Shown here one piece after another: positions 7,242 through 52,984 of a stretch of DNA of 64,000 nucleotides (positions are counted from its first letter, which is position 1; every line of letters begins with the position of its first letter). Location: contig NC_092348.1 in NCBI RefSeq assembly GCF_963676685.1, positions 64,976,001-65,040,000 of the forward strand, written 5' to 3'. A program made the translations under genes and the position numbers. The notes beneath the pieces are model-generated. The model was not told where the DNA came from and did no database searches. It was given only the letters and a program-made list of their open reading frames with translations. Source of the DNA: Mytilus edulis. Lineage: Eukaryota.

Positions 7242-7730
7242 AATAAAAGAGGGACGAAAGATACCAAAGGGACAGTCAAACTCATAAATCTAAAACAAAC
7301 TGACAACGCCATGGCTAAAAATGAAAAAGACAAACAGAAAAACAATAGTACACATGACACAACATAGAAAACTAAAGAATAAACAACACGAACCCCACCA
7401 AAAACTAGGGGTGATCTCAGGTGCTCCGGAAGGGTAAGCAGATCCGGCTCCACATGTGGCACCCGTCGTGTTGCTTATGTGATTACAAATCCGGTAAATC
7501 GTCTAATTCGGTAGGTCACATTCATGAAAGGGAAGGGGATTGAAGTTACGACGTAAGGAACATATTCGATATCATTTGTGAAACGGTTATTCCATAACGG
7601 TCAACCAACTCGTGATGGCGTCCGTAAAATTTACGAAGGGATGATTTCAACTTCACCATTTGGAACTCTTGGTTTAATAGCTTCCTTGTGAGCAGTAACC
7701 CTCTATCAAGAAAATCGTGATAGGAAATGC
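7242..7730 (-). mobile_element. Retroelement remnant (Penelope-like RT C-terminal region plus 3' sequence), copy 1
   Basis: Encodes ISYHDFLDRGLLLTRKLLNQEFQMVKLKSSLRKFYGRHHELVDRYG, resembling the post-RT helical region of Penelope-like elements. Near-identical copies elsewhere in the window. Confidence 0.7.
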
Positions 7731-8961: not shown

Positions 8962-9450
8962 AATAAAAGAGGGACGAAGGATACCAAAGGGACAGTCAAA
9001 CTCATAAATCTAAAACAAACTGACAACGCCATGGCTAAAAATGAAAAAGACAAACAGAAAAACAATAGTACACATGACACAACATAGAAAACTAAAGAAT
9101 AAACAACACGAACCCCACCAAAAACTAGGGGTGATCTCAGGTGCTCCGGAAGGGTAAGCAGATCCTGCTCCACATGTGGCACCCGTCGTGTTGCTTATGT
9201 GATTACAAATCCGGTAAATCGTCTAATTCGGTAGGTCACATTCATGAAAGGGAAGGGGATTGAAGTTACGACGTAAGGAACATATTCGATATCATTTGTG
9301 AAACGGTTATTCCATAACGGTCAACCAACTCGTGATGGCGTCCGTAAAATTTACGAAGGGATGATTTCAACTTCACCATTTGGAACTCTTGGTTTAATAG
9401 CTTCCTTGTGAGCAGTAACCCTCTATCAAGAAAATCGTGATAGGAAATGC
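8962..9450 (-). mobile_element. Same retroelement remnant, copy 2 (made by the tandem duplication)
   Basis: Nearly identical to 7242-7730. Confidence 0.7.
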
Positions 9451-28750: not shown

Positions 28751-31700
28751 TCATACATATTGAACTGCTTGAAGATACAAATTTGATTCGCTTCTCTCTA
28801 TACTCTCGTTTAACACATGTTCATTTCCTGTCGTTGAGACTGACGAAAATTTGTCATTCAATTCGTCAATATATGTTTGAAATCTCTTGTCAGTGTATGG
28901 ATGTGGTGGTTTGAATTGTCTATTTTCTACGTCTTCTTTTCTCCTCCATATTGTCGATTGGTGTTGTGGTAAGTTTGGTGCACTACTAGTTTTAGATGTT
29001 GGATTGTGATTTATTAAAGAACCGACCTGTCTTTGTAAACGTACAGATCCTTGAAAAGGTAACACAGGGGAAAGAACTGGTTGGCTTTTAACATGATGAC
29101 TGCCTAACGATTGTCTTTCTAGTTCCACAAAAGTAGGTTGAGATCGAGGTGCTGTATTACTATGGAGATTGTGCATTAATTGATTCTGTGAAGTATGACT
29201 AAAGGATCCCTTGAAATCTCTTGTTAGATTTTCCAAACTGGGAAATCTTTGAGGCAATGAAAATTCTGTTTTTCCAATAGTCGACGAGTCGCTTTGGCGA
29301 CGATAACTCGACGATCTTCTTCCACTGCGTGTATAAACGGTTGGACCTCTTGATAAGGTAAATCCTGATGACTCGTCATGCCTGTTAGCAGTAGCTGATT
29401 GATCAGATACAGCAGGTTGAAATGAGTGTTCATTTATTGGTTGATCTGTCTTTTTGGAACGAAGAGGTATTTCAGGTCTTGGAGTGTCATAATCAGCGAC
29501 TTCAGTATCTAGTTGTTTATCGAAAAGTGTATGGTCTATATCTAAGAGAGGATCCCTACAAAATAAAATAAACTACTTTGATAAATACATCTTTTAAAAT
29601 CGATAGAAATTGTAGTTAAGCTAGAAACTTGATTGTTTGAGGGAGTTTCATTGGGGGTTCTTATCCCGGATCCCGCTTACTGTTTAGTCATATTCCTGTA
29701 TCCCGCTTACGCTATGAACGTAATCAATTCTCTTTTTTTTTAATTTCCCGTGTCCCGCTAGAATTCATTTCCCGTTTTCACGGCACAATAATTTGACTTT
29801 CACGTGTTGTGCTTACAAAAATCGGTAATCCCGTCTCACGCTGAGACCCCAATGAGATCCACTTGGAGATATCAACTTATCTTTTCTAACAGCAACATGT
29901 ATAACTAACTTTTGAACAGATATATCATGTTAAGGAGGGGTAATTGCGAAAAATACCAGTCGAGAGAATGTTAAATTTCGCGAGCCGTAAGGCGAGGGAA
30001 ATTCATTCTCAAGACTGGTATTTTTAGTAAATACCCCTCAACAACAACCTATATCTGTTTAATTACACCGAATGTTAACGTGCAAAACGCATTGATAATC
30101 GTGTCATTACAAGCGTCCAGTTGAACAGAGTATTTTTTGATTAATACCATAGAAGAGAGGGTAAAAAATGCATATCCTTTTTGCCCGCGTCTTACTGTCC
30201 CGATTTTTACGCCGATGGCAACACGATTATGGAAATTTTCAAAATCGGGACTGATCGTATCCAGATCGGGCTATTCGTAGTGCCATCTTTAACCATCGTA
30301 GAACCATCGGCCACTTTTTCTAGCCTTTGGGGACAACTTCGGGAAGGGTTCTAAATTTTTTAACATGTTAAAAAATCCCCGAAGGTGCGTCCGATGTTGA
30401 GGGTTCGTATTGAGTTCGTATCACCTTCCTCACCATCGTAATGTCACCGGGAATGCATCTTTGAACATCGTATTGCATTCGTGTTTCCATCGTTTCCATC
30501 GGGCAGTTTTGACATTACGATGTCTACACGAATGAATCACGAAGCTACCCGAAGGTCTTACGATGGCAACACGACTTCGTGAAGACCTCGTAATCCCGTC
30601 GTGTTGCCATCGAATAAAAGTACGAAGGCGACAAGATGGAACTACGACGGCAATAAATCCAGCTAAATGTAAATGTAAGTTAATTTTCGCGCTAAAATAC
30701 ATTTAAAGTACCATGCGCGATATGCACTGGTCAGTCTAATACGACAGTTAAGAAAGACGTTAACAAAACATGCAGCTCATATCATATGATTCTATGAGAA
30801 CAAGAAAGGCGACAGCGTTGTTTCTATTAATTCAAATGGAACAAGAAGAGCAGCTATTACAGGCTCAGGATTTACTTTTAGAAGTAAAATATTATTTTTT
30901 GTCAATTTTTCATATCAAGTAACATAATGAAAATCTTAAACGCGCCTCGTACACCAACACTGCAGGTACACGTATATAGGGAAACCAACTTTTTCTTCAT
31001 TATTCTGATTTTTTATGTATCGTCTGAGTTGTTGTCACACGAATGTTTACTCCATAACCATTATGTTTTTTATATGTCATATTTTGCCGCATTTGTTGCT
31101 TTCCCCACATCCTTCCTTTTGTCTATATTATTATGATATTCTCCTGGAAAGAGCTCTTTTTGAATAAAAGGGATCAACGAACCCATTACCTTACCTTTAA
31201 GATAGATCAGTAAACATGGACATAATTATGGGTGATTATTCAGACTAGTGCACACTTTTTGCAGTTCAAACAAGGCAATGCCGAGCGTGGCATCCGCTCG
31301 TATGTAACATATTGGGGACAAATATGGACACTATATTTGTATATGACACATGCAGAAAATGGTAAATTGAATATGCATATGCGATACATAAACTATTTTT
31401 TTTTAGAAATCAACCAAAACATTCAGTAACTGGAAATACCTTTAATATTGTCTTTAGAACCAGCAGGTAAAAAAATGAGCAACCAATTTCCTGTGTATTA
31501 TGCTATTTTAAGAAGAAAAAACAAGTCCATCTGCATGACCTTGACCTTTGGCCTTGAACGTAAAGAATGTCAGATCATTACAATGAGGAACAATCTACCA
31601 AATGTGGTTAAAATCTTTTGAAGCATATTGGTTTTAGAGTGTTCACAAGGGTTATATTGCCTTGTATTACAACTACCACTGTGACCTTGACCTTTGAACT

Positions 31701-34700
31701 TTAAAGTCAATAGCGCTTAAGATATTCTAAACGAGTAACACCATACCAAGTTTTGAGCATTTTGGTTCTAGAGTGTCCATAACAATTTTATCTACACGCA
31801 ACTTACATGTAGTAGGCGAGGGGATAATAAACTAAGTTTTATAAGAATTAGACAAAAAGATCGATTTCCCGACATGCATGGCAGACTTGTACAGAAACGA
31901 TATGTTGTCGAAATTCTGTTCGTATCATAAAAAGTTCAAAACAGGTAGAACGCATTTTTAGATCGTTTGTATACTTGTATTATGTACATACATGTATTTT
32001 ACCAGATTTTGGTGGCATTATATGCAGAGACTCAGAGTCAAGTTTTACCCTTCAAGCCCACGGTCTTCCGTCTTATGATTAAACGAGAAATGAAATGTAC
32101 AATATAATATATATTCAATATTGATCAAACAATTTAAAACGCGTGATGCCATCGGTATATAATTAAAATGCATCGTAAGCTGTACACGACGTCTTTTAGA
32201 CATCGTATGGCCATCGCGCCATCATTGTAATCCATCGTGTAGCCTTCGTAATCCATCGTGTAGCCTTCGTGATCCATCGTGTAGGCTTCGGCTGAGATAT
32301 GAAGCTTAAATACCCGTCTTCGGTTAACCTTCGTATGTCCATCTTTTGCTATCGTATATAATTTCGGCACCATCGTATAGACTTCGTTATTCATCGTACT
32401 TGCTTCGGTCACTTTTTGGTATTTTAACGAGATCGGGGACGACTTCGTACGAACTTACAATGTTCGCATTCGGGTGTCCATCGTATATAAAAATCGGGAC
32501 AGTGTGACGCGGGCATTTCGCATATACCCCAGCGCTGTTGAAAAATGAACGATATTCATTTGATAAAAGTAAATTGGTGAAAAATATACTGGCCACCAGC
32601 CAATCAAAACCCAGAATTCTTGAATAAGGTGTAATTATATTTACTGTAAACAGTCTGAAATATCGTATTATATATCACGAATCCTTGTAAGCGCAGTTTA
32701 CTTGGCATTTAAGTAATAATGCGTAAGTAGGTGATAAGTTAAAAGTTGAAAATGAATATTCTAACTAAAACATTGAGCCAAATTTAATAATATAGTTAAG
32801 TTTTCATATGGGCTAAGTTCGGATGGAACTAGAGTTCTGACTAGAGTTCCATATGAACGGTAAATAATTTTGAAGAGTAAGGTCTCTAGATAACCGGAAG
32901 TACAAGGCCCCTACTCTGAATATGTTTACATTCAAATTTGATTGGATTGACGTCATAACATCCGGGATATCGAGTCGATCTCTAGGAACCCTGCCACAAC
33001 CAAGAGTTCCTCGAGTGTTAATGGCGGGAAAGCTATATCCAATCATAACAGGTGTTATATATGACCATATCAATTCCATCTACTCTAGATATCCATCCGA
33101 ACTTGGCCATATATTTTCCTTGTTTACCATGTATTTATTCACGGCGTCTTTTTATCAGAGTTTTATATTATCAGAAACAAAATTGTAATCAAGTTATGAA
33201 TATACGAAGATTTGGAGTACACCAACCTCATACCACAAAATATTTTGAATAATCATTTACTTACCCCATTTGGCGTGAAATAATATTTTTAAGCCACAGG
33301 GCAGATGGTCTCTGTGTCCTATCCCGATCCCAACACTTAAGTAATATTCCATACAACCAATCAGGGCATAATTTCGGTCTTGGTGGTACTGCTCCATTAT
33401 ATAAAACATCTAGAAGCTGGAATAATAATTGGCAAATTGAAAATATAGAAACACATACTGTTCTTACTTAAAATATGAATAAAAATAATGTTTTAACTAA
33501 GAAAAAATATTTTTGTTTTATGTTATGATTCTTACTTTGATATTTATTCTATTACGAAGTATATCATCTAAACAGTAAAATCACAAAATACTGAACTCAG
33601 AGGAATGTTCAAAAAGGAAAGTCTATAATCAAATGGTACAATCAAAAGATCAAACACATCAAACGAATTGATAACAACTGTCACATTCCTAACTTGGAAC
33701 AGGCATTTTCTTATGTAGAAAATGGTGGATTGAACCTGGTTTTAAAGCTAGCTTAACCTCTCGCTTGTATGACGGTTGCCTCCAAAACCATTATATTGAC
33801 AACGATACGTAAACAAAACAAACAGACACAATAAATCTGTTTAGTTCAAAATAAAAAAAATAATCTTTCAAGTCAAAATGTAGATGTAATGTATTAAAAA
33901 AAACCGCCATAGATGACTTGACTATGCTTCTTAATTTCTATTTTTTACGACATACAAAAACATGTATCTCTTATTTTTCTGGAAATTATCAAGCCCACAG
34001 CGTTTTTTTTGTGTTGAAAACATTTCGTATTTTATTCGCTTTTAAAATTTTAAATATTCTGTCAACAATTATTTTGACAGGTACCACTTTGAAAACACCA
34101 ACACCAATATTTTAGATTTAAGAAAACATATAGTCGAAATCACAAGATAGAGGACAGCTAATAGGATAATAACCTTCTATACATTTTAAGATATATCATC
34201 GTTAATATTTTCTCAGATCGGACTCAATACGAACTTTGGTCTTTTTCGTTTTTTGGCGTGGCGTTGTCAGTTTATTTTTAACTTATGAGTTTTAATGTCC
34301 CTTTGGTATATACCGCATCCTTTCTTTTTATATGGAATGGATATACGGAGAAAGATAGTATAGTAACTGACAGAATACATACTCAGTCCAGTTTGTGAGG
34401 GGAATTGACCTGTCTATGATTTATATATTTCAGTAATTAAATTATTTATCATTAACTGTTTTTTGCACTTCTCCAAGACTGTTTTTTTTATTGTACCTCA
34501 GTCTTAGCTTTGGAGTATATTATTCAATATAACTGAAATCATCATTGATACCAGGCTCAATGAATGTATCTGTAATATTTTTGATTTATCTTTTACTGAC
34601 AGAAATATAAATCTACATAAATGAATTTTTAGTAAAACTAACCACATCACTTTCAACGTAAGCAAATGGAGCACAGTTGAGTTGATCAGCCATTGGGTCC

Positions 34701-37700
34701 TGGCTATGTATATTTAATGCAGTGTAGAACTCATATACAGTCATTGCAAAACGATAGACATCACTTTCGTATGAATATTGTCCATGCTGAAGAACTTCAA
34801 TTGGATTCCTATTCATGATAAAGTTCATCACGTGATAGTTTGCATAATACAACAGATAAATTATTCTACATAGCTCAGCTTATTAATGGCAGCAACATTG
34901 AGATAAAAGTATGTTACAAACGTGAGGATTTCAACTTTTCAATTGTCAAATTGTATTTTTTTAAGTATTATAACATAACAATAACCCCATCGTATGAAGG
35001 AAATTAACATACATGTATATCACTTGTTACGTTACGAACGACGTGTCTTGTTCTAATGACACTAGGGCCATGTTTCTGCGGTCCTAGTTCTTTAGACACC
35101 AGAATAGTCTTCTGATCTTTCATTTTACCAAATGTTTCCTATTCTCCAACTGTAGGAGTAGGTCCGGTAAGGGCCAATTTCGGCCTCAATTTTCAAGTTC
35201 ATCTAACGAAAGATTGTAGAAACTTTCTAAACACTTAAGTGTCTATTTCAATTGATTCAATTAGTTAATGGGGAAGATTTTAACTTAATAAGTCATTTAA
35301 AACGCCCCGATTCAAGCTTAAATATAAAAAATCTATCAAATATGCCAAAAATCGTCACTTTTCAGATGGTTTTTGTCACAAATGAAAGTGGCCGCATCCG
35401 TGTTCATCCTCAACCTTTATATATATTATGTATTATCATCAAATACAACTTACATTTCAATATTATGAATGAACACGAATGCGGCCACTTTCATTTCAGA
35501 CGGAAACCGTCTAAAATTTAACTAAATTGCTACAATTGTGAAGATTTCAGTAATTTAGCATGACTTAATGATGCTAGTACCCGATATATGTGCATTGTTT
35601 TGTCAAAAACAGCACATATTTATGTAGCAGAAGCATTCTACCTTGCAATAAATATCTAAACGATTCTATTTTCACAATTTTCTAAAACTGTTATATTTTG
35701 AGGCCAAAAAGGGGTCTTACTGAACCTACTCCTTTGGCCAGGTGATAATTTACATGGCGGATGATGCGTGTATAGCAGGAGGCGCTGTTGGCTAACCAGG
35801 TATCACTCAACTTGGATTCTTTTTGAGGGCATTAATTGTGTATTTTTTAATCGATTTGTAATATTTGAACTCGATAAAATACTATTCTAAATATCATGAT
35901 AGTTGATAACATAAAAACACATATTTTTGAGAAATTATCTTATTCATTAACACTGTCAACTTTCAAACCTTTTTTTTTAAATTTATGCTTTTAAATGTAT
36001 TTTTGTTATCTTTATAAACCTGTTATTAAATAATTTATTATCTCTTTTGAAAAAAAATAATACTAATTAGGTAAGAACGATATATTTTCGAATACAGAAC
36101 GGAAAAACAACCGTATTCACCCATATTTGTGTCGTTCTGAAATTTTTTACTTGAAGTGAATTACAGTAATTTTTGTTCATGAATGTACGTAGTTATTTAG
36201 AAATTATAAAGCAAGTGCATAACTCACCATCTTCTCCTGTCTTGATACATAGATCCAAGTAAACAATCCTCAATTCCATCAGATTCTTCAAAGTATAACA
36301 CTCTTCCAATTCTTGGCAAAAATACCTTTGAAGATTAGAAGAAACTCTCATACTCATTTTTTATAATAAAACTTTTTGAGAAGATCAAGAATGTATTATC
36401 TAGGCTTTTTTATTTTGTTCCTTTTTTTTTGGTCATAAAACTGTTCTAGTATTGAAGTTTTAATGCACCCTTGAATGATGATTTTAAAGTTTACGCGTTC
36501 CATATCCAGTCAAACCATGAAAAACGCTGATTGACATTCTAAAGTGTATTTCTTTTCTTTATAACATCAATATATGCGCTAGAAAAATCAAAGAGGTAAC
36601 AAGTGTAATGATGGTTTGGTTTTTACTTAAATGTCTCTTAAAATTGTTATATTTTGACATTAGAATATTTAAACAATAGTGTTAAGTGTAAAACAAGAGG
36701 GGTTTTATTCAATCTATAAAAAAACACGCTAATATCTACATCGTAAAATACGTAAAATACCAAAATTTAGTTACCTGTTTTGTGTCGTCAGAAACATATA
36801 AATGTTCAGCACAAAGATCTCCTAAAATGAAATGTCGGCGATGCATTTCGGAAATAAAATGCGCAATTTTGACAACTATGTGAATGAAATCGTCTTGGGT
36901 TGATGCTGGATTTCCATGGCGATGTTTAAAAGGATGTGTAAACGCAAATTCCAATAGGTTATTTCCTCTGATTGTCCTGTATTTCTGCAAGATTTATGAG
37001 GAAATATTATTCTTCAAACGACATGCTGATGAATCCTCAGTAAAAATCGTGCTGTTTTTGACATGCTGCTAGTAATACATGTACTTTTCTCAAAACTTAT
37101 CTACTTGTAATATTAAACATATGTCATTTCATTTTCGCTTTTACCTTTGAAATATAAATACATCTTATAATACTTATAGAATTGTTGACCAACGATTAAA
37201 AACTTTTGATGTTCATTTTTTTTTTATTCAAGTTTTGATACATACTTAAAAGATTGACTATTTTTCGTTATGATTAGTTATTCATAATATAAGACCAACA
37301 CCGTACAATATAATTGAATAACCTACCAAATAAAATGGAAAATTTTGTTCCTGCATTCTTTGGCCTGTTTGTGATAAATGCCTTTCCGGGGAATCATATA
37401 AACACATTACTTCTTTATAAGTTTCTTCGTCAATATTAGGTAAAATCCGAAGAAATTTCAATGTTACTGGTTCTCGTATGTCTAGAAATCCAAACTAGAA
37501 AGAATATTGTCAGTTATTTAGATAGAATTATAATTGTTTTTTTATTTCGGAATATTGCAAATTTGATGATTTGTCACGGCAAATTGATTTGTTTTCAGTC
37601 GGTTTTTTTAAATATATATATATATTCATTTAGGTTAAAGTTTAGATTACAAAGAAATTTCTATAAATCTTATTTTATTTATATTTTCTCGGTTCTTAAA

Positions 37701-40700
37701 TATGAAAGATAAATCTGCCACTGTCCAATTTCACCCCCTTTTTAATTTGTGTCTTTTTTCTTTGCTTTATCAAGATTATTTATTGAATAGAAAAACATAT
37801 AGAAAGATTATGTACAACATAGGGAAATATAGTTCGCTCTCTTCTATTTTCACATACAAAAGGTCGATTAACAAAAATATTAACTAGACTAAGTTCTTTC
37901 ATTTCTTCTTAGTAAACAATGACAATAGGGTAACCAAATTTCTAAAATATGTTGGTGCATGTTTCTATAAGGAACAATTAAGTAAATACATTATTATCAT
38001 TATCAGTTTTAACTTTTGGCTGTCAAAAGTAAATGAGGATAATTAAAAAGAAGGTTTCATACTTGGAAAATTTAAACTAAATAATACTCTGAAAAAGGTG
38101 CTAGTATAATGACTGAAACATATTTTTGAAAAAATGAAGGAACATTCTCATTTTGATGATCAGATTTTTATACAAATAAGAAAATCTAGTATGATTGCTA
38201 ATGAGACAACTCTCCATTCAGGTCACAATGGTCAAGGTACAAATGTAAGTAGATATAGGCTTTTATCAATGAGCAGAACTCGTACCACGTGGTAAGCTAT
38301 AAAAGGCAAAAAAAATGGCTTATGTTCAAGTGGTTTACTCCCTCAGTGTTTGAAATGAATATCCGTTTGAACCAATAACTTGTATAACTGTTTTAAAACG
38401 ATCACTTAAGGTACAATTCAATATTAAAACTGTTAGCACTGTCACTTACTGTCATTTATTGTAAGAATTGTTAGAAAAAATATCAGACATAACATGTACA
38501 AAAGTTACCCTTTTGAGGATTCTAGGTTTATCTTGTGCTGTTAAATCAAGGGGACTGATAGCTAGGCTGTTACTATGCAATCTCTGACTAAGTCGGGTAT
38601 TCACATACGTATGTCCTGATATTTTCGTTGCATCTAATATAAAGAAATGAACTATAAAACTAGTAAATACATAAAAGGACAAACCTAAAAGTTGTCACAA
38701 AAAAGCAATAAGAGAGAGAAACAATCGAGAGAGATGACACCTGGATGCTTTTTTCTCAAATCTCCCATTTGTTTACAGTTTGCAGACGAAATCCACCTTC
38801 TCTCAACCCATATATTCCACATCCCCAAATGTTATAACCTGGGTTCCATGTTAATCAGTCTTTAGTTTTAGATATTGTTTGATGTAAACTGTTGTTTGTC
38901 TGTTTGTTTTATTTTCTTTTTTTCATGGCGTTGTCAGTTTATTTTTTCCTTAAGAGTTTGAATGACACTTTGATCGGACGCCATCACGAGTTGGTTGACC
39001 GTTATGGAATAACCGTTTCACAAATGATATCGGATATGTTCCTTACGTCGTAACTACAATCCCCTTCCCGTTCATGAATGTGACCTACCGAATTAGACTA
39101 TTTACCGGAATTGTAATCACATAAGCAACACGACGGGTACCACATGTGGAGCAGGATCTGCTTATCCTTCCGGAGCACATGAGATCACCCCTAGTTTTTG
39201 GTGGGGTTCGTGTTGTTTATTCTTTAGTTTTCTATGCTGTGTCATGTTTACTATTGTTTTTCTGTTTGTCTTTTTCATTTTTTAAGCCATGGCGTTGTCA
39301 GTTTGTTTTTGATTTATGAGTTTGACTGTCCCTTTGGTATCTTTCGTCCCTCTTTTGATATCTTTGTCCTCTCTGAAGTTATTGGCTTATTATAAAAAAT
39401 CGACACTAGACATAAAAAGAATTAATATAACAACAATAGATACAAAGGACTAATGAAAGAGTACTCGCATTAAATGAAAGCTGATTCAAAGCCAATTACA
39501 ACAAAAAAATAAATCATGTTTTCATGGTCATTTTTGTTTCTGATGTAAAATTACCATTAATAAAAACAAACTGGTTGTTCGAACATTTCACAAACCGAAG
39601 ATACTATTTGTTTTTCTTTATGACGTATACAAACTATAAATGAGGTTAGTTTTTTATAAAATGAAATTCGTTGTTTAGTATTACAGCGTAAAAGCAGAAT
39701 AGTTTATTATGGCGTTAAACACCGATTTCCATACTTACTACTTGATCCACCGTGAATACATTTCAGCTGATAAATCAGTTTTGGTACTTCCTAGGGAAAA
39801 AGATCACAGTTAAATAAGGTATTTGGTGCATCATTAATTAACTGTAATGTAACGGTACCCAAATTGCACCGAGTACCCAAATTGCACCTATTTAGCAAAA
39901 ATAGCAGCGGAAATCTTACAAGATATCCTAGAGACTAAACCATTTGTATTTTTATGATTTGATACTATGCACATCTTTCAACATAGCTAAAAATATTTAG
40001 ACATGCACAAAACATTCACAGTATTTATCAACAGATGAAGTGTTTACTGAAAAAGCAAAATGTACTGAAACGTCGCCATGCGACGTCATCAAAACGTCAT
40101 CTTTTTAAAATGAGCAAATACAATATATTACAAGTATCATTTTTTTTAATAAAGAGTAAGCAGGGACTTATATCCAATTGTTCAAAATATTTGAAGAAAT
40201 TAAACAAAAGCTCTGTTATAAGACTTTTGACGATGCAATTTAAGCATAGATGCAATTTGGGTACTCCTCATTTCAGAATCATTGATGGTTTGGAGGTCAG
40301 TTTAGACCAATTTTTCACATGGATTAAAATCAAATTGGTGTACCAATATAATAAAGAAGGATATGGCTACAAAATAAACACAGAATGGACATTTTTGTCT
40401 TTATCATAAAAAAATGTAGGTGAAAAAACTGTCAAAATAGGTGCAAATTGGGTACCGTCACGTTAGAAACCTTAACGTACGTACTAATATATATCTGAAT
40501 TTTTCAACATTCTAAGGATGTTCTTTCCCATGAGTACATTATCATAGCTGTATTGGGCAAAAACCTTTCGATTTTTTTTTCAGACGAGACATATCTTATA
40601 AAAGAATTTCCTTCTATACATCGATCATTAAATTTAGAAAACACTTTGTAAATGATAAAAAAAATCATAGTCGAAATTGGTCAATCTGAAGGGTTGAACG

Positions 40701-43700
40701 CTAAACTATATCAAAACCTGAAGCCGTGACGTTGTTCTTGACAGAGCAAAATCAAGCAAAAACAACTTTTATAAAAGATACTAGAGGGACCATCAAACTA
40801 ATAGATCGAAAATAAACAGACAACACCATGGCTATAATAGAAAAAGACAAACAAACAAATAAAGTTCACAAAAGGCACAACATAGAAAACTGAAGACTAA
40901 GCAACAGGAATCCCACCAAAAAATGGAGGTGATCTCAGGTTCTTCGGAAGGGTAAGCAGATCCTGCTCCACATGTGGCACCCGTCGTGTTGCCCATGTTT
41001 TTACAAATCCGGTAAATAGTCTAATTCGGTAGATCACATTTGTGAAAATATAGTATAGTACAGTACGTACAAATACGATGATAAGTTATAACGGTCGCAA
41101 ACTTTTTTTTCAACAGAGACGTTGCCATGTAGTTTTTTTTTAAACTAGAACAGTATCGAATATCGGCACTTCAACGTAATTTAAAATTTCAAAATTTCTG
41201 TTGTTATCCTTCAACAGAGAAGTTTTACCTGTTGATTTTTCTTCTGTTGTTTTGCAGCTTTAAAGTTGGTTTACGGTGATCGCTACTCGATCTTTGATAC
41301 TCTCAGGTTCGAAGTTTTTCAGTTTAGCACACAACGGACCAAAAATTCGTAAATTATGCAGAATGTTTATCTATATAGTTATCAAAGGTACCAGGATTAT
41401 AATTTAGTACGTCAAACGCGCGTTTCGTCTACATAAGACTCATCAGTGACGCTCATATCAAAATATTTATCAAACCAAACAAGTACAAAGTTGAAGAGCA
41501 TTGAGGATCCAAAATTATATATCTTGTAACTTTTATTGATTTATGCCTTCTTTTTATATAGATATTAGAATTCAAAATGTTTTTCACAGTTCATTATTTT
41601 ACTATTGAAAACTTACAATTTCAGGATTTCCTTGATTCATATCCAGTTGTGGCAATTCTTGACTTTGTTTTGTGTCGAGTGGAACACTAATTTTTGAACC
41701 TGAAGAATTACATTTAGACTTAATAATCAGAGTCGACTACCGTTATTAGTTCCTTTTTGTGTTCAATTAAAATTAATGCTAATATCCTCACCAGAAGCAC
41801 GGAAAATCTATAGAAGAAACTCTCAAAAATGAATAGCTAGATAGCTTAAGGAGACTACAAACATACAAGATCAACTTTATAGAAATGAAATAAATTTATA
41901 ATTTTTTTGTTCAAGAAGTAAAATATGCAATAGAACACATAGAAATACACTCAATTTGTATTATACAGACACCTTTAGAATGAGTAATAATCTTTTAATA
42001 ATTTGTTCAGAACCTTGCAGATGTATTGTAACCTTTGGCGTATAGCGACGTGTTAGGCTCCTTAGATTTCGACCATGAATGTACCCCATGAAGATTATTC
42101 CAGATACACGTGTTTTGTTTCATGTCATGGACCATGTGGTTATTATACGTTCATAGCACACAACTCGTGAACAAAGGCTAGTTCGGAAGAATTATTTCCT
42201 GCTACAACTACAAACCGACATATTAAAGCGTAAGGGAATATAAATGAAAATAACACTTAATGGAATTCCTGCATCTGGATCAGCATGAAGTCTTTTAAAT
42301 CTTGGGATGTTTGAATACCTACATATATAAATATAATGAGCTGTATGTATATCAATAAGTTAGGCATCAAACGGATAGCAAAACTCATTGAAGATAAACT
42401 TCGCATGGTAGAATATTATTTAGAATATCAGTCGAATCCCATCTCAACCGATAAAAGATAGTGCCATTTATCAAAAACAGACTTAAGCAGGTATATTGGA
42501 TATCGGATATGGAAGTTTCACATGATTCCAACCAGGCACCGATACTTGAAAAACCCAACATAAGATTTTCTTATAAGTAGCTTGCATATAATCATACCTT
42601 GATCCTTGAATTTTTCGTCGTTCAACAACAATCCAATTTTTGTTTTTATCGCTGAAATGTCCGATCTATCGCTTGGTTGTGTTTGTGTTAACCCTAGTAT
42701 TGCGTTGTGAACTTCGTTCGGGATACATGGCCACTTGTACAACTTCAGATGACTGAACAATATCTTTACATAAAAGAGGATACATGTTACTTGTGCCATT
42801 ATTATCTTGAAATACAACAGTATACCCAGAGCAACGTATGATAGTTTTGTTTAGTGATCAACTTCAAAACTAGATGTTTTTGTCCGTTCCAACTTTGTTC
42901 TGTCACTTTCTACATACATTTATCAATATTATCTTGTAACCATATATGGTTTAAACCCCAATTACCCCAACACAATGCCTGAAAGTTTCCCTGCGCAATA
43001 TGTTGAAAATGTAATGCCGGGATAATTTTGTATCGAATGTTAGTGCATTTGATGGTATTTTAATGTATTTCCCTTGTTCGGCGCTTTACACTGCATGTCT
43101 TACCAATGTTTTATACCTCTTGATATTAGATTCACTAACAAAACAGATATTACTTCTTTGTAAATTACTTTAAAAAGCGAATTTGCATTTTGCTGAATGT
43201 ATGAGCAGAATCTTCTCGTAAAATCTTACTTTCTAACCAATGTTCTAAAATGTTAAACTTATAATGTGTCTAACCTTTTTCATTGAATTTACAGCAAAAC
43301 TAATTTTTTTTTAAATATATATTTGTATTATATTACATAAATTTGAATATCATGTTATGCTTACGTATTCCAGAATTTGATCAGTTGGAGTATTATAAAC
43401 TTCTGTGTATGGATGACAACCACGAGTGAATACTTCATACACGACATTACCAAGCATCCATGCGTCTGTCCGTTTGTCAAACCTATCTTCTAAGATACTT
43501 TCTGGAGAAGACCAAAGGACTGGAATTCCTACAACTTCTATAACATAAATTTATACATTTCTATTCTTTTTAATTCCATGATAAGTCAGGTTGTTTTTAA
43601 TTCATAATTAATTGTATCTTGGTGATGACAATGGTAGAGATAATGGATTGCGGAAGTTTTTTTTTAATACAACTTGTTTTTGGTATTGCTCAGTATTTAG

Positions 43701-46700
43701 TTTTCCTTATTGTGTTTTGCAGACGGTTGTCTTTTGATCATTTTTGGTTTATTGCCATGTCATTTCATATTGTCAGTTTGTCTTCAATTAACGAGTTTGA
43801 ATATCTCTTTGGTATCAACCATCTGTATTTTGTCATAGTTCATTACTTTTTCGTGTAAAATTTTCTACGAATCTGTTTAAAGACCGCTACATATTCGTGT
43901 GAATTTTCCAAATAAGGAGCCATACCAATAGATGTATCGTATTTTGACGATATTTCATATTGGAGAATAACATAATGATGTTAGTTATTAATTAGTTTTT
44001 ACTTTTTATTTTACAATTTATCAATGGAAATGTTTTAGTAACAATATATGGGAGTGGTTATTTTCTACAAAAACAGTATTCTGATTCCCAGTTTGAAGAA
44101 AAATATTTAGATCAAAGATAAAGGAAATATTTTTTTTTTATAATCAACAAAATAATAAATAATGTGACGCTTGCGCTGTAAAGAAAGAATATAAAGAAAT
44201 ATTTATTTTAAAAGACTGTTTTTCAACTAAGAGGTACTTTTTGTTATGTATGTCGTTTATATCTGTACCGTGACGTCTAAAAAATCCCCTTTTATTCCTA
44301 CATATATAAGTTGATTTAACTACATGGATCATGTTTCTATAATGTCTTTATCAAATTTTTATGCTTGAAAATAGTTTCTCTCGTTTAATTTATTTTTATG
44401 ACTTTTACTGTCAATTGTCCGGTTGAACTCACTAGATAAATATTATAAACATTACATGTATTGGTTGTTCAATTGTCTCAAATGTAACAACAGATTATTG
44501 ATCGAAAGTTAAATGCCCGTTTTTAGTTTAATCTTGAAGTTTATTTCATTACCTCAGAACAACATCACGATTACGATCTTAACGTTCTATATCATTTTTT
44601 TTGGTGAAAAAATGTCAAAGTTGAGTTTTCATTGTTTTGAACTTCGCTTTCTGGAAGTTTTTTAATGATTAAGATAAAGAAAGAAATGAATATTTTAAAA
44701 TAGTATTTGAAAATGAAGGTATTTTAAATGATTCTAGAATTAAAATGTTATCAGTACTCATTACTTCATTTAAAAAACTTTTGGGTAATTTTTGTGTTTT
44801 TGTGGGTTGTTTGTTTTTGTAATGGCTGGCCAGCGATCAAAATGTTTGAATGTTTCTTTAATGACGTTAAAAAAATTAAAAAAAATATCCAAGGTATTTA
44901 CCTGAAATACTGCTGGTTTGACTAGTGGCAAGACTGAAGTCGTGTAAGAACACCGTCCTTCCTTCATGCCGTATGCTAAATGCTGAGCAGGTTAAATTTC
45001 TATGAATGATTTTGTGTTCATGTAAACATATCACAGCTTCTATAATGTCCACAACTAGTTCTAATAGTCGATGCGTCTGTAACTGATTTTCAACATGTCT
45101 ACTGTTCAATAAATAAGTTAAAAGATCGGGGTCTTTTGACTTTTCAGTCACATAAAACAACGGAATTGGCCGACACTGGAAGGCAAACAATTGCATTATG
45201 CACCGATGGGTTACACCTTCATGTAACGAATGGAGAACTTGTAGAGCACTGGTGTGACGATCAGTATCATACTTCTTTGATTTCCGTATATACTCATCCA
45301 CGTCGCCCTTCGAGAGTGCGTTTAGAGTCGGTAAAAGCATGTGCATAGTCACTATGGTAGAGTCTGCCAATGTTCCTTCATAATCCACCCACTCAGGTTT
45401 AAAATCCTCACCTAGTTCAACACTACTAATTCTTATTTTAAAATTGATTGGATGTAATTTTAAGCTGATTGTTTTGACAAACCTTTGTCTAATTTCATCT
45501 GATTTTACATCATGTTTACGTAATAAATATATGATGTTGACAATAATTTGTTGGCTGCTACTTAACAACAAAGGTTCTATCATGATCAGTAACCTTTTAC
45601 GTAGAGAAAGTCCAATTCTGTCATTGTCTAGGAAAAGATTCAAAATTTTTGCGAGTTTCCAACTCAATTGAGATGGTGTTCTTTGGAAGTCGACATCTGG
45701 AATAAATTAGATATCCATTGGACGTTTCTCTGTACTGATACATCCCGTCATTGTGTTATTGGGCTTTGGTAATTTTTTGTATTTTTGTTTTTCATTTTTG
45801 CTAATGTTCTTTGTCCATATGCCTTTTTGAGTTTCTTTGTTATATATGACGTGGCTTTTTACTTATACATTCTGTCATTGTGTTATTGTGCTCTGGTAAA
45901 TTCTTTTATTCTTGTCTTTCATATGTACCTATGTGCTTTATCTATATGCCTTTTTGTGTTTCTATAATACATATTTTTTTGTTTTTGTAGTGATTAAGAT
46001 TATAACACAACGTTGACTGATGTACCCATTTTTTTTCTTATATTTTTACCTATTATGTCTGTTTGTTTTGTTCACACATCGTTGTCAATATATTGGAGTT
46101 TTATGCGACTGTTATACAAGTGAAAGGTTTAGCTAGCTACTAAACCAGGTTTAACCCACCATTTTCTACATAAGAAAATGCCTTCACCCAGTCAGGATTA
46201 TGACAGTTCTTATTCGACCGTTTGATGTATTTGAGCTTTTGATTTTGCCATTTGATTAGGGACTTTCTGATTAGAATTTTTTTCGGCGTTCGGTATTTTT
46301 GTCATTTTAGATTTAAGAGATTTCCGTAGTATGCAAAACAATTAAAGCTCCCCCTCTATGTATAGCTTCAAAACCGCTAATATCTCCACACAGTTTATGT
46401 TTTTCGTCTATTCTTAAACACATATTGTGTATTTACCTGGTTATTTTCAAAACGAAGGTCTGACCGGTGGTATCGTAAATGTGTTTGAGTAGGAGATGAG
46501 TTGGGTACCAGAAATATTTCTGAATTTTCGGGATTTTTTTTTTATCAAGTTTTAAAGTGGACGACAAAAGATATGCAATGAACTCATATGATCTTACCTA
46601 TATCCTTTCCTAGTCTTAATAGTACTGTTTTAGTTACAAGATGAAGGACTGAAAATAAGACATCATTCATCTTTTGTTTTCGTCTTGCTTTTCTCAATGA

Positions 46701-49700
46701 TTGACGAATTAGCTGATCGAAAAATTCTATGATTTCCATATCCATTGTTTTCATCACCTAAAATATTCAAAACTTGTGTATAAACAAATAAAAATGTGCG
46801 AGTCTTTAAAAGGAGAGTTTTTATCTTTTTTTATTTGTTAAATACATTTAAGAAAGATTTAAGTCAAGCAAATTATTTGAGTTCATTCTATAATGTATTC
46901 TTTGTGTTGTCGTCTGATATTTATTTAAATAGCACCCATAGTTTTGCATTTGTTTCTACTGATGTAGTCAATCAAAGACTATAACTCGAACCGATTCAAG
47001 AGAACAGTCTTGACATAGTGTAAGTTTACATTATTACAAAGAAAGTGTCATTACTTTGCTTCGGGTTTTGACAAGCGTTTGGAGTGATTTTGTTTCTAGA
47101 ATAGCCACATTCCATCTTTTCGAGCACAATATGCAAGATAAAGGAGAGAAGATATTTAAATTATCCAGTGATCTAACAGCGGTACGGTACGAAATAACTT
47201 TTTTTCCAATTAAATGATAATAATATAAAACAAAATGCCAAGCATAATTTGCTAGATTAACCTCTGGTAGCTATCAACTGCTTGAGTTTAAAAAAAGATT
47301 TATCAATTATAAATTTTGATTTTATCTAAATAGTAAAATAGGATTTCAAACTTTATATTGTGACAGATTTTGTAGTTATAATATGAATAAACAGTTCATC
47401 GAACGCAAAATTTGAAAAATAAATTACTTTATCAGAGCAAACCGAAAACGTGACTTGTTTTCTCTTAACGATGAAGAAAGCTCTTTGAGTCATTTACAAC
47501 GTCATTTTTACTTTTAAAACCATTAAAATAACTAGTTACAAATGAACAATCTATCATAAAATTGATTGTTTATCAGGCTTACTGGTTCGACGCAATATAA
47601 GCATTTTTGTGCTGATGCGGTGAAAAGCAACCACCAATCTATCAATCAATCAATCAATCTAGAAACCATTCAATCAATCAAGAAACCATTCAATCAATCA
47701 ATACTAATTAGAAATATTTTCACTTGTGAATATTGACAGATACAAGTGAAGTAATAATTGTCAACTAACCAGATTTGCAACGAAAGCGAGGCACGTATAC
47801 TGTTCGAGGAAGCACATAGTGTTTTGGAAGTCTCGTAATATACGACTTCTATTTTCTTGGATCATCAACGCATCTTTTAAATTTCCAATTTTCAATGACG
47901 TTGATATTCCAACTCTTTGTTTGAAATCAACAAGGAGTACTAGAAGCGAATGTATCAAGCCTGATAATGCATCCTTATTCCCTGCTATGTGATTCGCTAC
48001 TAAGCTTCGCAAAGATTGGTCTGATTCTGCGCAGAATGATTCTATTTCACCTTTTACTTTCTCATGAAGCATAGTAATAGTCAATGTTGACAAATAAAGC
48101 ATAGACATAGTCTCCAGGACAACGGGTAACAAGTTTATCATGATATGAGAGTCTCCAAAATTAGCTTTCACTATTCCTATCAACCACTTTGCTGCTGTGA
48201 AGAGATCGTTCGCTCGTAAGCATCGGTTCATTATATTGTCTTCTAGTTGTAAATGGTTCAAGGTTACTATGATATTTTCCTGGATGTTATAATCTGCAAT
48301 CCCAAGTAGTGTTATCAACCCAAGATAATCCGAACTCATACGTAGTGACTTTAATGTTACATTCTGTATCTGTTTAATCAACTCTTTCTTTTCTTCTTCC
48401 CCAACAATGTAAAACCGTCTTTTCAGATTGTCTAGTGAATCGGTACGTACCAAAACTAATAAAGAACAAACCATTTTATTTAAGAATATTTTGGCAAAAC
48501 AAAACAAGTATCTCAGCTATTGAAAATAGTTTGCTTGTATGTCTTGTTACGACAAACAAAAATACTTCATTAATAAAGTTTTTTGTCTTAATGTAAAAAC
48601 AGTTATCTGTATCTTTCAATCAGTTCTTAAGTAGCAGAATACTAGAGTGTAACTCGTTTTTTATATGTATCGTGTTGCTCAATATTTTGTTTTCGGGGTT
48701 TGTTTTGTGAACCAATGTGTATTGTGCTGATAAGTAGAACTCTCATTGAATATTAAAATATATCAAAGAAAACGCTTGGATTATTATTATTATTCATCTA
48801 CATATTTGTGCCTTTCCTTCTATGAACGGTTAATTATTTTCTCATCGGTATCCTTAAACTTATCATGGGTGTTTTTAATAACAAAACATATTGATAAAGT
48901 GACGTTTGCGTACTTATTTTGAAGTGTGAATCATAGTTATATGTTTCTTTACTTGATTATCCATTTAGAAAAAAGTCTTTGGATAAACATTGGGTTCTTT
49001 AATATAATATTGTATACACCCCTGGGTGGATGTCACTGCTGGTGGACGTTTCGTCCCCGAGGGTATCACCAGCCCAGTAGTCAGCACTTCGGTGTTGACA
49101 CGAATATCAAATACGTGATCATTTTTATAAATTTCCTGTTTACAAAACTTTAAAATTTTCGAAAAACTAAGGATTTTCTTATCCCAGGAATAGATTACCT
49201 TAGCCGTATTTGGCACAACTTTTGGGAATTTTGGATCCTCAATGCTCTTCAACTTCGTACTTGTTTGGCTTTATAAATATTTTGACATGAGCGACACTGA
49301 TGAGTCTTATGTAGACGAAACGCGCGTCTGGCGTACTAAATTATAATCCTGGTACCTTTGATGACTGTATACAATCACAGTAACAACAAAAAATGCATTT
49401 TATATTCAAATAAAGGAATAAGAAAGAACTCATACATGAACGATTTCGCTTTGAATTAGTTATTTGGAGATATTATTAGTTTCTAGTTTCGGATTACATC
49501 AAAAGTTTATTGAATACGGATACAAACACTTCCGTATATTTTTGCGTAATAAAAGACGACCTTTAATCACATAGAAAAGTGTTTTACACTTAAATTTCGA
49601 TATGCAAGATTTATTTTTCATCTTCCTAAAAGAAAAAAAAATGTATAGAAACTGAATTTTAGCATATGAAATAAACGTCACTGTATCTGTTTTCATATAA

Positions 49701-52700
49701 AATGGAGTTCAAAATATTAACAATTTATACTATGGTTAATAGGTTAATATACATAATTAAGTGAAAACCTATTTTTGCCACATATCGGGATAACTTGATA
49801 AGTTTCTTATTTGTTGGAAATTATTTTCAAAATATTTAAACGCGCAAGGAAAAAAATTGAAATTTAGATTACCCGTTCTTTTATTTTTTTAGTTCACAAA
49901 AAACTCTGTATTTGTTGTATTTTCAAAAATATTAAAAAAAAAAACAACTCCCCAAAATTTAAAGTATTTGCACAGAGGTATCTATTCCTTTGCAAAACCG
50001 AGTGCATGAATAATTCAATAATTTTACTGTTTTCAAAAATTGTATGTATGTATGTCTTTAGAAATAGAGCAATATGAATAAAAAAATATGAGAGTTGTGC
50101 ATCAATGAGATTGCAACCAAACAACACACACACACACACACACACAAACAAACGAGCTTATCCAAGAAACTAATGAATATAATATTTTTAGTTTATATTC
50201 TAAATTGTTTAATTTTTTTAAATTTTTAAATCATATGATATAAAGGGACAAAGAAAACAATGACATTAAAAACAAGCAATAAATCCACGATGGGAGCTTC
50301 GATAGATGTTCAGAAGATGGAGGCTCAATTCATTTAACATTGGCAATCAACTTAAAGAAACTAACAGGAACAAATATATGAAGCGAATGAAAGTATAACT
50401 CCTGATCACGATATAAATACATATTTACAGATCGTGCCTTTTTGGAGTGTAAAATTGGATGATTCATCTAATTCCCCTCAACGCGATTTACATATATAGT
50501 AATTCTTACCAGATGGGAAGCAAGCTTTGGCCAAAAGGAAAGTCCCTCTATTATTTTCTCCTGGTTCTAATGTCGACGAATGAACGAACCCACAATGTGA
50601 ATGTTTGAAATGTCTTAGTTTCTTATAAGTTCCACCAATACTGTTGACGTCATCATAATCAGATGAGTGTTGTTTGTAGAATAATTCTTCGTTTCTTTCT
50701 CTATTATCAGAAAGAGTTGTTTTTACGTAAGACGCGATAGGTTCAGCATCGGTTATCTTAAACATTTTGAAATTGTGGAATATTTGTTTGGTTTGAAGTC
50801 CATGAAGATCACCAGATATGATCACCTTATTACTTACATCCTGTAAGTATCTCTTGATTTTTCGGATGTTTTGTTGTAGATGTTTACAGATAACCAGAAT
50901 GATGAAATCTGACTGTTCGACTACTCTCGGCACTTCTAAATTTATAACGTCTGCTTCTACAACGAAGTCTGTTGTCGACAAATCATGTTGCTCGAGAGCC
51001 AAATGGAGGTTAGACGCCCATGTACATCTGTCTAGCAGAAAACATCGCATCACACATACTTGGTGAGAATCCGTATTAATATAGCTTGAGCTTTCCATTG
51101 TACTATCTAGGCATGGTGTAGGTCTAACTTCGTCAGACTGTTCATCTTAAAAGAAATATTTCACACTGAAAATTCCACTATAAAAAATAACCATATCCAA
51201 ATCAATTTTGTTAACAAATAAAAAATACATCTTACAATAATATCAATCCCAAGGTAAACTATAAGTCTATTGAATTAACAGGTCAAGAATATATAATTAC
51301 ACATTGCATGTAAAGCGTGAAGAATATTTGAATAGTTAAGTATTGAATTGTTAAATGCTACGATTTGTTGTTAAGTTGTCAGATATAACCAGGAAGTCGT
51401 AGTCCGTGATTTTAAAGTATATAAAGAAATTAAATAGGTCTATACTTACATGAAAGTCACAATGGCCTTGGTTAGGAGGTTTTAATTTTTGTCGTAATAA
51501 TTTTCAATGCATTGAATGCCACTGTCCTTTTAAAGCATAATAGAGAAAATTTCGAATATATTTTTGTATATAATTATGCAATATTACACCTGAGTTTTTA
51601 CCTACTTTTACAATATTAGTATATATTTCCCACAAGTGATGATGCGAAGACTTTTCTAGGAAGTCGTTGAAAATTAGATGGTTGACCCAAGTGAGATGGG
51701 AAGTAGTACGGATTCTGAACAGTGATGATCAAAAACGAGAAGGATATATTTCGAGTAACTTTTTTGCAACACAGAATTGAGATGGCCACCAAAAGATCAC
51801 AGTTTTCTTACAAGACCTTCACGATTATTTTTTTTTGCAAGCAGATTGTTAAATGGAGAATTACCAATATAGCTCTACATTACGGGAAACCAGTTTCAGT
51901 ACTGTTTATAACGAAGGGTCGTCCTGAACATCCATAAACTATTTGAACCTTGACGTTACGCAATCAAAATTCAATCAGTTTAACTAAGGGAAACTAATAC
52001 TCTTGTAATTAATAACTCGCGAGTTTCAGCTCGAGAGTTTTAAACAATTAATCCATCACATATTTAGTAGTGCTGATTCTTTATATCAATGTTCGCGACA
52101 GAGTATATGCATACCAGTGACGTATACGTAATGGCGTAATAAAATTTGTTTGTTAGTTTATTGTGTCAATTTCATCATGCTTTACTTTTTCATGGCGGTC
52201 AATTATTATTGATCAGAAGGAACCACCGACCTTTAAAATATGAAATTTGCAAATCATTGAAAAATTAAGACAAGCATCCCAAACTGTAGAAATCCCCATT
52301 GGTAAAGTTGCAACATAAGGTTAAAAGTATATCCTTGAATAAATATACAATTACTCATATATTGTCGAGTTTCCTCTTTTGTCAGTACAAACCTATTATC
52401 ATGTCGGAATCTAAAGAGCATTCTCCAGGAACATAAAGCAAGCAATCCTTCATAGCTTTGTCATCATTCACACTAACTACGTCAGGTTCTTTTAACTCTT
52501 TTGCATTTTGAGGTATACAGACATCAACACTTGTTCGTTCTTTGCTTTCTTTAGTTTCGTTGTTTCCATTGTTTTCTGTTGAATTGTGTTTCCTTTCACG
52601 TCTGCGTGACGCTCCTTCATAATTGAAATTGGCATGGACATAACTTGCAAGACTGTCGACTTCAACAACCGGAAAATGTTTGAAATCTTCGGTATTTTCA

Positions 52701-52984
52701 TTCAATGTCTCTTTGAAATTTCCAGCAATAACTGTTTTGCTACTTTTCAAGCACTGAAGAATCGTTTCCAATTTTGGTTTCAAATGGTCACAGAACATCA
52801 AAACCACGTGATCGGAACGTTTTGAAATTAGCAAAAGGTCTTTGAAACTAACCTTGTCGATAATATGTTCTGATGGTACCAGATTAAAATTTTCAAAGAT
52901 TGAGAAAACATTTGAAATAGGAATACAAGAATCTCTCTCCTGACATCTCAAAAATAATATACTGCCCTGGTCTAACTGTGACAT
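28751..52984 (-). CDS. 1688-aa protein: 2x TIR/SEFIR-like repeat + helical region + two tandem tyrosine-kinase-fold pseudokinase domains + disordered tail; 16 coding exons, intact
   Basis: Exons (-): 52984-52393, 51145-50510, 48455-47770, 46757-46598, 45696-44902, 43537-43365, 42763-42598, 41699-41617, 39790-39739, 38633-38509, 37494-37327, 36984-36775, 36325-36228, 34808-34643, 33416-33265, 29555-28751. All GT-AG, phases join, 5067 nt, no internal stop. Kinase motifs: domain 1 IIHRNLTCSAF, HDFSLA, IPVLWSSPES, TDAWMLG, HPY; domain 2 LGDLCAEHLYV, PRIG, RRWNPIEV, SDVYRFA, CPDWLY..CW....QRPS. Confidence 0.88.
29639..29864. mobile_element. Small MITE-like element
   Basis: Imperfect inverted ends gagggagtttcattggggg / ccccaatgagatccactt; internal tcccg repeats. 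Confidence 0.5.
29915..32638. mobile_element. Outer Helentron/HINE-like element split by the 30182-32515 insertion
   Basis: Hairpin aaaaataccagtc...gcgagccgtaaggcgag...gactggtattttt, and inverted pair taattacacc (30060) / ggtgtaatta (32628). Class is inference. Confidence 0.5.
30182..32515. mobile_element. 2.33-kb non-autonomous DNA transposon (Harbinger-like) with 3-bp TSD, nested in another element
   Basis: TIRs tgcccgcgtcttactgtcccgattttta / taaaaatcgggacagtgtgacgcgggca; TTT on both sides; catcgt-rich subterminal regions; 21-bp tandem x3 at about 32227-32289. Confidence 0.8.
32810..33107. mobile_element. ~300-bp MITE
   Basis: TIRs ggctaagttcggatgga / tccatccgaacttggcc; internal ctagagttc-like repeats. 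Confidence 0.65.
35154..35733. mobile_element. 580-bp MITE in an intron
   Basis: TIRs aggagtaggtccggtaagggccaatttcggcctcaa / ttgaggccaaaaaggggtcttactgaacctactcct. Confidence 0.75.
38976..39357 (+). mobile_element. Same retroelement remnant, opposite orientation, intronic
   Basis: ggacgccatcacgagttggttgaccgttatgg...ggtatctttcgtccctctttt is the reverse complement of about 7245-7623. Confidence 0.75.
39847..40463. mobile_element. ~615-bp MITE in an intron
   Basis: TIRs atgtaacggtacccaaattgcacc / ggtgcaaattgggtaccgtcacgt with TA flanks; the 18-bp TIR motif is duplicated at the left end and recurs internally near 40250. Confidence 0.75.
40772..41046 (-). mobile_element. More diverged partial copy of the same retroelement remnant
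   Basis: aaagatactagagggac...agggtaagcagatcctgctccacatgtggcacccgtcgtgttgc matches 7257-7525. Confidence 0.7.
45735..46310 (+). mobile_element. Interspersed element with about 2 diverged ~128-bp internal tandem units; related copy reversed at about 33570-33835
   Basis: atacat.c.gtcattgtgttattg.gct.tggtaa occurs twice; the 3' part ccaccattttctacataagaaaatgcct...cggtatttttgt matches 33580-33760 in reverse. Confidence 0.6.
47637..47702 (+). repeat. (AATC)n microsatellite, probably a retroposon tail
   Basis: aatctatcaatcaatcaatcaatc...caatcaatca. Confidence 0.7.
49020..49365 (+). mobile_element. Interspersed repeat family (partial copies at about 4180-4262, 12000-12065, 13620-13757, 41375-41515)
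   Basis: Shared gagtcttatgtagacgaaacgcgcgtctggcgtactaaattataatcctggtacctttgat. Confidence 0.75.
50122..50146 (+). repeat. (CA)n microsatellite
   Basis: About 12 CA units read directly. Confidence 0.9.
50510..52984 (-). other. Two exons, each encoding one copy of a ~115-aa alpha/beta repeat with a TIR/SEFIR-like pattern
   Basis: Copy 1 vs copy 2: LRCQERDSCIPISN/MRCFLLDRCTWASN, SDHVVLMFCDHL/SDFIILVICKHL, KTVIAGNF/KVIISGDL, FKHFPVVEVDSLASYV/FKMFKITDAEPIASYV. The duplication is seen directly; the TIR-fold assignment is inference from the betaC-like S-D-x-hydrophobic stretch. Confidence 0.6.

Follow-up and report, generated by a model that had tools for sequence, protein, structure and literature searches.

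A stretch of 64,000 nucleotides from Mytilus edulis (NCBI RefSeq assembly GCF_963676685.1, contig NC_092348.1, positions 64,976,001 to 65,040,000 of the forward strand; hereafter the window, numbered from its first letter) carries on its minus strand what, judged from the sequence, is one intact multidomain protein-coding gene. The predicted product combines two N-terminal alpha/beta modules, a helical region, two tandem kinase folds with degenerate catalytic motifs (pseudokinases 1 and 2, PK1 and PK2) and a disordered tail. On balance, we consider that the gene probably encodes a cytoplasmic, non-catalytic scaffold of ~1650 amino acids (aa) belonging to a lineage-restricted family. An earlier note on this DNA had proposed the same layout, namely a duplicated N-terminal alpha/beta module, a helical region, two degenerate kinase folds, a disordered tail and neither a signal peptide nor an obvious transmembrane segment, and had been unable to place it in any characterised animal family; our analysis bears out these points. 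The identification of the modules as TIR-like, made in the same note, did not hold up.

Gene structure

Open reading frame (ORF) lists for both strands place the gene on the minus strand, from an ATG at 52984 to a stop codon at 28751-28753, exactly the limits reported before. All minus-strand open segments were translated and searched by tblastn against 88.7 kb of flanking DNA on the same chromosome, where 13 of them match paralogous sequence with their order kept. Donors and acceptors were picked by phase and consensus, together with exon-by-exon conservation in the paralogues. The rebuilt model has 14 exons, all of its introns are GT-AG, and its ORF runs uninterrupted for 1660 aa. Thus, the uninterrupted multi-exon ORF claimed in the earlier note stands, while its counts (16 exons, 1688 aa) could not be recovered exactly; the difference is small, and two acceptors are ambiguous. 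For exon 7 the acceptor may lie at 42763 or at 42805, the latter adding 14 aa, and for exon 8 at 38684, 38651 or 38633, all three being in phase and equal in pyrimidine content.

Composition analysis revealed a polar N-terminus with nothing resembling a signal peptide. The sole hydrophobic 19-mer approaching transmembrane level (Kyte-Doolittle 1.58) corresponds to a T-rich stretch before the downstream exon 8 acceptors and may be an intron polypyrimidine tract rather than protein. A cytoplasmic location of the protein is therefore plausible. At the other end, exon 14 (28751-29555; this and all other exons of the gene are on the minus strand), reached through the only in-phase junction from exon 13, encodes a 267-aa low-complexity tail rich in Ser, Thr, Pro, Gln and Arg, with seven Tyr residues and 69% disorder-promoting residues, followed by the stop codon. 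The tail has no Pfam match.

Two degenerate kinase folds derived from tyrosine kinases

PK1 is encoded by exons 5-7 and PK2 by exons 8-13. Exon 5 (44902-45696), which contains the end of the helical region and the PK1 N-lobe up to the DFS motif, by itself matches Pfam family PK_Tyr_Ser-Thr (PF07714) with 36.6 bits against a cut-off of 23.1 (E = 4e-9). Its best match in the PDB is BTK (8.7e-8), and in this alignment HRD corresponds to HRN, DFG to DFS, and the catalytic-loop Asn is lost. Exon 6 (43365-43537) covers the end of the activation segment, the 'PxxW..PE' signature of tyrosine kinases and helix F; it matches TrkA, EGFR, PTK7 and BTK in the PDB with E-values down to 7e-11 and is 73% identical to the corresponding part of a neighbouring paralogue, P1 (see below). 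The C-terminal helices of PK1 are encoded by exon 7 (42598-42763, or up to 42805 with the alternative acceptor), which matches paralogues at 50% identity. The HRN catalytic loop is invariant in six orthologous sequences from other species at 48-55% identity, and DFS is present in all orthologous exon ORFs that reach the motif, one fragment stopping short of it. Asn takes the place of the catalytic base Asp in all orthologues and in three of the four paralogues. The Gly-rich loop is not recognisable, and the beta-3 position is likely occupied by His, Asn or Ile rather than Lys, which would mean that the Lys has been lost.

Support for PK2 was built exon by exon, from exons 12 and 13 and, marginally, exon 10. 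Exon 8 (38509-38684, acceptor ambiguous) encodes the inter-kinase linker and the start of PK2, with a weak paralogue match (E = 5e-5), and exon 9 (37327-37494) encodes the N-lobe, with paralogue matches of 38-43% identity. Exon 10 (36775-36984) comprises helix E and the catalytic loop, in which LGD...AEH replaces HRD...ARN, as seen in a marginal alignment to RYK (E = 0.06) and in the alignment of paralogues. In exon 11 (36228-36325), PRIG takes the position of DFG, and PR(I/L/V)GR together with DRRRW is shared by all paralogous copies in which this exon was found (5/5 in the alignment); the exon was not detected in paralogue A. Exon 12 (34643-34808), covering the helix F region, scores 21.8 bits against PK_Tyr_Ser-Thr (E = 1.3e-4) and is 51-64% identical to paralogues, its only PDB match being a marginal one to EGFR. 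Exon 13 (33265-33416) encodes the C-terminal helices with a CP..LY..CW...RP motif and matches JAK2 JH1 (1.1e-5), PYK2 and HCK in the PDB. Taken together, these comparisons identify both folds as derived from tyrosine kinases and as pseudokinases in the sequence definition of the term. The degenerate motifs of PK1 and PK2 are old and are kept across paralogues and species, which indicates a selected non-catalytic role.

N-terminal modules and helical region

Exons 1 and 2 each encode a module of ~120 aa followed by an acidic/Ser-rich linker. Exon 1 (52393-52984) contains the start codon, module 1 (aa 1 to ~122) and the linker; the position of its ATG is common to the orthologous exon ORFs P0006 and P0007, and the donor (G|GTTTGT) is kept in P0007. 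Exon 2 (50510-51145) encodes linker sequence, module 2 (aa ~226-345) and a second linker ending in a conserved FPSG motif; its orthologues P0002 and P0003 share 49% identity with it, and the similarity ends at the donor. The two modules are 25% identical over 116 aa (BLASTP E = 2e-10), so that at the sequence level they are true duplicates. HMMER searches of 1.84 billion cluster representatives with exon 2 yielded no more than seven short fragments of exon size from environmental or run assemblies, to which a profile search added a few module relatives. A 948-aa match to exon 2 was discarded as spurious; it contains no domains. Some of the relatives, at 90-97% identity, stem from the same species or a sister one. 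Others, at 45-51% identity, are either of module-1 type (P0006, P0007) or of module-2 type (P0002, P0003). In the maximum-likelihood tree, module-2-type sequences from other sources cluster with support of 86/90, and the grouping of module-1-type sequences has no resolution. Given the clustering of the module-2-type sequences, the duplication probably predates the splits among those sources. A metagenome locus search with P0006 found nothing.

In the family alignment C14, C20 and C65-x-H67 are invariant or nearly so, and I75, L79, F101 and F104 are also conserved. An AlphaFold model based on a 16-sequence alignment (predicted local distance difference test, pLDDT, 64.8; predicted template modelling score, pTM, 0.56) has five strands alternating with helices and no long helix between strands 4 and 5; single-sequence modelling of exon 2 gave pLDDT 30. 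Prediction of a complex between modules 1 and 2 returned a score of 0.00, which is no evidence either way. A rhodanese/Cdc25-like Cys loop, a receiver domain and a caspase-like Cys-His dyad were considered and dropped, their motifs not being conserved in the alignment. The module is best described as an orphan flavodoxin/Rossmann-like alpha/beta domain and as a candidate new domain family.

The helical region spans exon 3 (47770-48455; 31% identity to paralogue P1, E = 4.8e-28), exon 4 (46598-46757), which continues it and is the sole phase-compatible link between exons 3 and 5, with strong splice sites, and the first 90 aa of exon 5. This Leu/Ile-rich stretch of ~370 aa (17% Leu, 10% Ile) has no Pfam or NCBIfam match. 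Its nearest ESM-atlas clusters are HEAT/ARM/TPR solenoids (0.88-0.92), a lead only, and it is possibly an ARM/HEAT-like solenoid.

A small family on one chromosome

To place the gene among its relatives, the whole assembly was searched for paralogues, and the loci found were fetched and compared. Paralogue P1 (C5:64933198-64945704, plus strand) lies 43 kb before the window on the strand opposite to the window gene. It faces the family cluster of the window gene and, within a compact 12.5 kb, encodes a single module together with the helical exon, both pseudokinases and an S-rich tail. The same set is found in paralogue B (C5:19919595-19937205, plus strand), the divergent module of which was detected with a hidden Markov model (HMM) built without it (E = 4.7e-8). 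Paralogue A (~C5:13211934-13231448, minus strand) has the helical and tandem-kinase parts and no detectable module; its N-terminal exon is disordered and, like exon 2 of the window gene, ends in FPSG. A further, truncated paralogue lies within the window on the plus strand (12084-22704). It consists of a match to the last PK1 exon (12084-12215), matches to PK2 exons (15952-16080, 16446-16670, 17848-17949, 19898-20065 and 20917-21057) and, after these, a 270-aa Ser-rich ORF (21892-22704); searches revealed in it neither a module nor a helical exon nor the main PK1 exon, and its tail and that of the window gene have no similarity. Finally, a fragment with PK2 only is present at C5:64964336-64966355. 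Among the family members, only the window gene has the module duplicated. As far as these sequence matches define it, the gene is a member of a small lineage-restricted family whose loci, at least four or five in number, share one chromosome. Orthologous exon ORFs in other species share 45-51% identity with the modules and 48-55% with exon 5.

Alternative readings of the modules, the kinase folds and the gene model

Pfam assigned no family to the modules of the window gene (E <= 1 for the full exon 1 and exon 2 ORFs, E <= 10 for module 1), the best Pfam result for TIR being TIR_2 at a sub-threshold E-value of 0.11 in 2 of the 16 module relatives. PADLOC and NCBIfam gave no match to the modules, and no TIR was retrieved when the profile of the module family was compared with all PDB sequences. 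When the modules were aligned with 28 canonical TIR domains cut from the same genome, hhalign returned a probability of 0.65%, with an alignment that is topologically sensible, though non-significant. Nor did the check by AlphaFold and Foldseek suggested in the earlier note favour its claim, as the five-strand alpha/beta model retrieved nothing at E <= 1e-3. VIA-align produced no TIR-specific signal reaching significance, and no structural similarity to solved TIR domains stood above that to other flavodoxin-like folds. In place of conserved box 1, box 2 (BB-loop) and box 3 motifs, or of the catalytic Glu of NADase TIRs, the family alignment has the Cys, His and hydrophobic positions given above, and box motifs are not visible in it. 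Several results would nevertheless fit real, very divergent TIR domains, in which case the protein might be a TIR adaptor or sensor nucleating Toll/IL-1R-type assemblies coupled to a tandem-pseudokinase platform. The nearest ESM-atlas feature clusters of the module are bacterial TIR/TIR_2 families (0.83-0.89; a lead only), the predicted order of five strands in an alpha/beta arrangement agrees with the TIR fold, and the two TIR_2 scores and the topology of the hhalign alignment point the same way. Weighing these results against the failed TIR-specific searches, we regard TIR homology of the modules as unlikely, and we are equally doubtful of the adaptor or sensor role that would follow from it.

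For the rest of the protein, several points weigh against a non-catalytic scaffold encoded by a single gene. The scaffold mechanism is deduced from motif loss alone; the PK1 N-lobe does not align to profiles, which leaves the assignment of its beta-3 Lys uncertain; PK2 of the window gene retains the catalytic-loop Asp and, at the likely beta-3 position, a Lys; and ATP binding and trace activity can persist in pseudokinases with HRN, ErbB3 among them. As to the gene model, the exon joins are predicted from genome sequence alone, exon 4 has the weakest support of all exons, with no paralogue match by tblastn, paralogues likewise give no support to the 5' end of exon 8, and protein libraries yielded only exon-sized fragments, the architecture in other species being inferred from pieces. 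The kinase motifs could be taken to mean that one domain, most likely PK1 with its DFx Asp and ErbB3-like HRN loop, has weak or atypical kinase activity or works as an ATP-dependent switch, and that the protein is an enzyme, not a pure scaffold; the Lys and Asp kept by PK2 would agree with this. We find such activity quite improbable, as PK1 has replaced its catalytic base in all orthologues and three of the four paralogues, has lost the loop Asn and shows no Gly-rich loop, while PK2 has no DFG Asp in any copy with exon 11 found, and the paralogues have Asp where its candidate Lys stands. The way in which exons were joined, and the bridging position of exon 4, would also allow a chimeric model, in which two neighbouring genes had been merged, one contributing the 5' exons (modules and helical region) and the other the kinase exons. 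However, the order module-helical region-PK1-PK2, all on one strand, recurs at two further loci, one spanning just 12.5 kb, and such repeated occurrence at independent loci is strong evidence against a chimera. In addition, the junctions between exons 3 and 4 and between exons 4 and 5 are phase-compatible with strong sites, the latter having a single in-phase solution, and exon 5 opens with 90 aa of conserved, helical sequence ahead of the kinase fold, in which there is no start-codon context. A chimeric origin of the model is, accordingly, highly improbable in our estimate, and we retain the reading of one intact gene for a non-catalytic scaffold.

In the same genome, Pfam TIR and TIR_2 each have at least 150 scored matches among ~655 candidates; many lie in long ORFs of 700-900 aa that lack introns and form tandem clusters, as expected from the bivalve Toll-like receptor (TLR)/TIR expansion.

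Comparison with known proteins

Like JAKs, the window protein is apparently cytoplasmic and begins with a long non-kinase region that precedes two tandem folds of the tyrosine-kinase type, and its exon 13 matches JAK2 JH1 (see above). Yet no FERM or SH2 profile matched exons 1-5 at E <= 1, which sets the protein apart from JAKs; moreover, its second fold has no DFG Asp, in contrast to the active JH1, and the exon 13 match to JAK2 is no better than those to PYK2, HCK or EGFR. It is not an IRAK/Pelle protein either, since no death domain was matched, and it has two kinase folds with best matches to tyrosine kinases instead of a single TKL-type (tyrosine kinase-like) domain. Profile searches with the exons found neither a SAM domain nor a canonical TIR domain.

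ErbB3/HER3 and RYK/PTK7 resemble the window protein in having tyrosine-kinase-derived folds with a degenerate catalytic loop. The catalytic loop of ErbB3 is HRN, as in PK1, the exon with the PK2 catalytic loop aligns best to RYK, and exon 6 matches PTK7. However, these are single-domain transmembrane receptor pseudokinases, whereas the window protein is predicted to be cytoplasmic, with tandem folds and unrelated N-terminal domains. TIR adaptors and related proteins (MyD88, SARM1, BCAP/BANK1, bivalve TIR-domain proteins) share with it a small N-terminal alpha/beta module and the general character of a signalling protein, and SARM1 combines a helical ARM region with TIR; the modules of the window protein, in contrast, fail every TIR-specific test made here. 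We know of no TIR adaptor with a tandem pseudokinase.

Plant tandem kinase proteins act as immune receptors or decoys. Several of them (WTK1/Yr15, Pm24, Sr62, Rpg1) are soluble and have two kinase folds, at least one of which is a pseudokinase (PMC6997164, PMC8956640). The likeness of the window protein to these would be one of analogous architecture only, with no homology implied. They belong to another kingdom and another kinase lineage, usually have one active domain, and lack N-terminal alpha/beta modules and a solenoid.

A full-text literature search found no paper that describes the architecture of the window protein or combines pseudokinase, TIR and bivalves, and the term 'tandem pseudokinase' appeared only in the contexts of JAKs and plant tandem kinases. 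A pseudokinase review has no mention of tandem, mollusc or TIR, and an oyster kinome paper none of tandem or JAK. By the sequence features compared here, the window protein matches no described family among those considered.

Other features of the window

An intron-less ORF of 334 aa with a DUF3472 domain (Pfam E = 1.6e-48, 166 bits) lies on the minus strand at 58068-59072, 5 kb upstream of the gene start. Intron 7 carries an interspersed repeat (38950-41085), translated copies of which, 75-100% identical, occur at 7245-9345 of the window, with further copies in both orientations at several places in the upstream 60 kb. The repeat, probably a non-autonomous transposon, is devoid of Pfam domains. 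Intronic tandem repeats include a 127-bp unit (x1.8) directly upstream of exon 5 (45733-45963), a (CAAT)n/20-bp array at 47635-47702 within intron 3 and, at 32227-32290 in intron 13, a minisatellite of three 21-bp units. A (GT)n run at ~50100-50190 is translated as VCVCVC.

Possible function and significance

From the loss of catalytic motifs, the protein would be expected to signal without phosphotransfer. The pseudokinase pair could provide docking or allosteric surfaces, like JAK JH2, ErbB3 or the decoy domains of plant tandem kinases, the N-terminal Cys/His alpha/beta heads might bind a ligand, metal or partner, and the Ser/Thr/Tyr-bearing tail with its seven Tyr residues may serve as a phosphorylatable docking strip. 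An immune role of the protein is speculative; circumstantially, it would suit a family that is lineage-restricted, clustered and fast-diverging. A more far-reaching proposal is that the family is an animal counterpart of the plant tandem-kinase immune receptors, in which a Rossmannoid (possibly TIR-related) Cys/His head would sense a metal, nucleotide or pathogen-derived ligand and the solenoid would couple it to two decoy pseudokinases guarded or targeted in infection. We hold this to be very unlikely; if true, it would amount to a previously unrecognised class of bivalve cytoplasmic innate-immune sensor. The finding is less striking than was first claimed: with the link to TIR unsupported, a direct tie to Toll/IL-1R signalling is unsupported as well.

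Tandem kinase-fold proteins are rare in animals, JAKs being the textbook case, and, to our knowledge, no described example joins two dead folds to an orphan alpha/beta domain. The module with its invariant Cys/Cys/Cys-x-His pattern is a candidate new domain family. Should the scaffold reading, which we favour, be correct, pseudokinase biology would gain a new natural architecture, and bivalve biology a candidate lineage-specific signalling scaffold.

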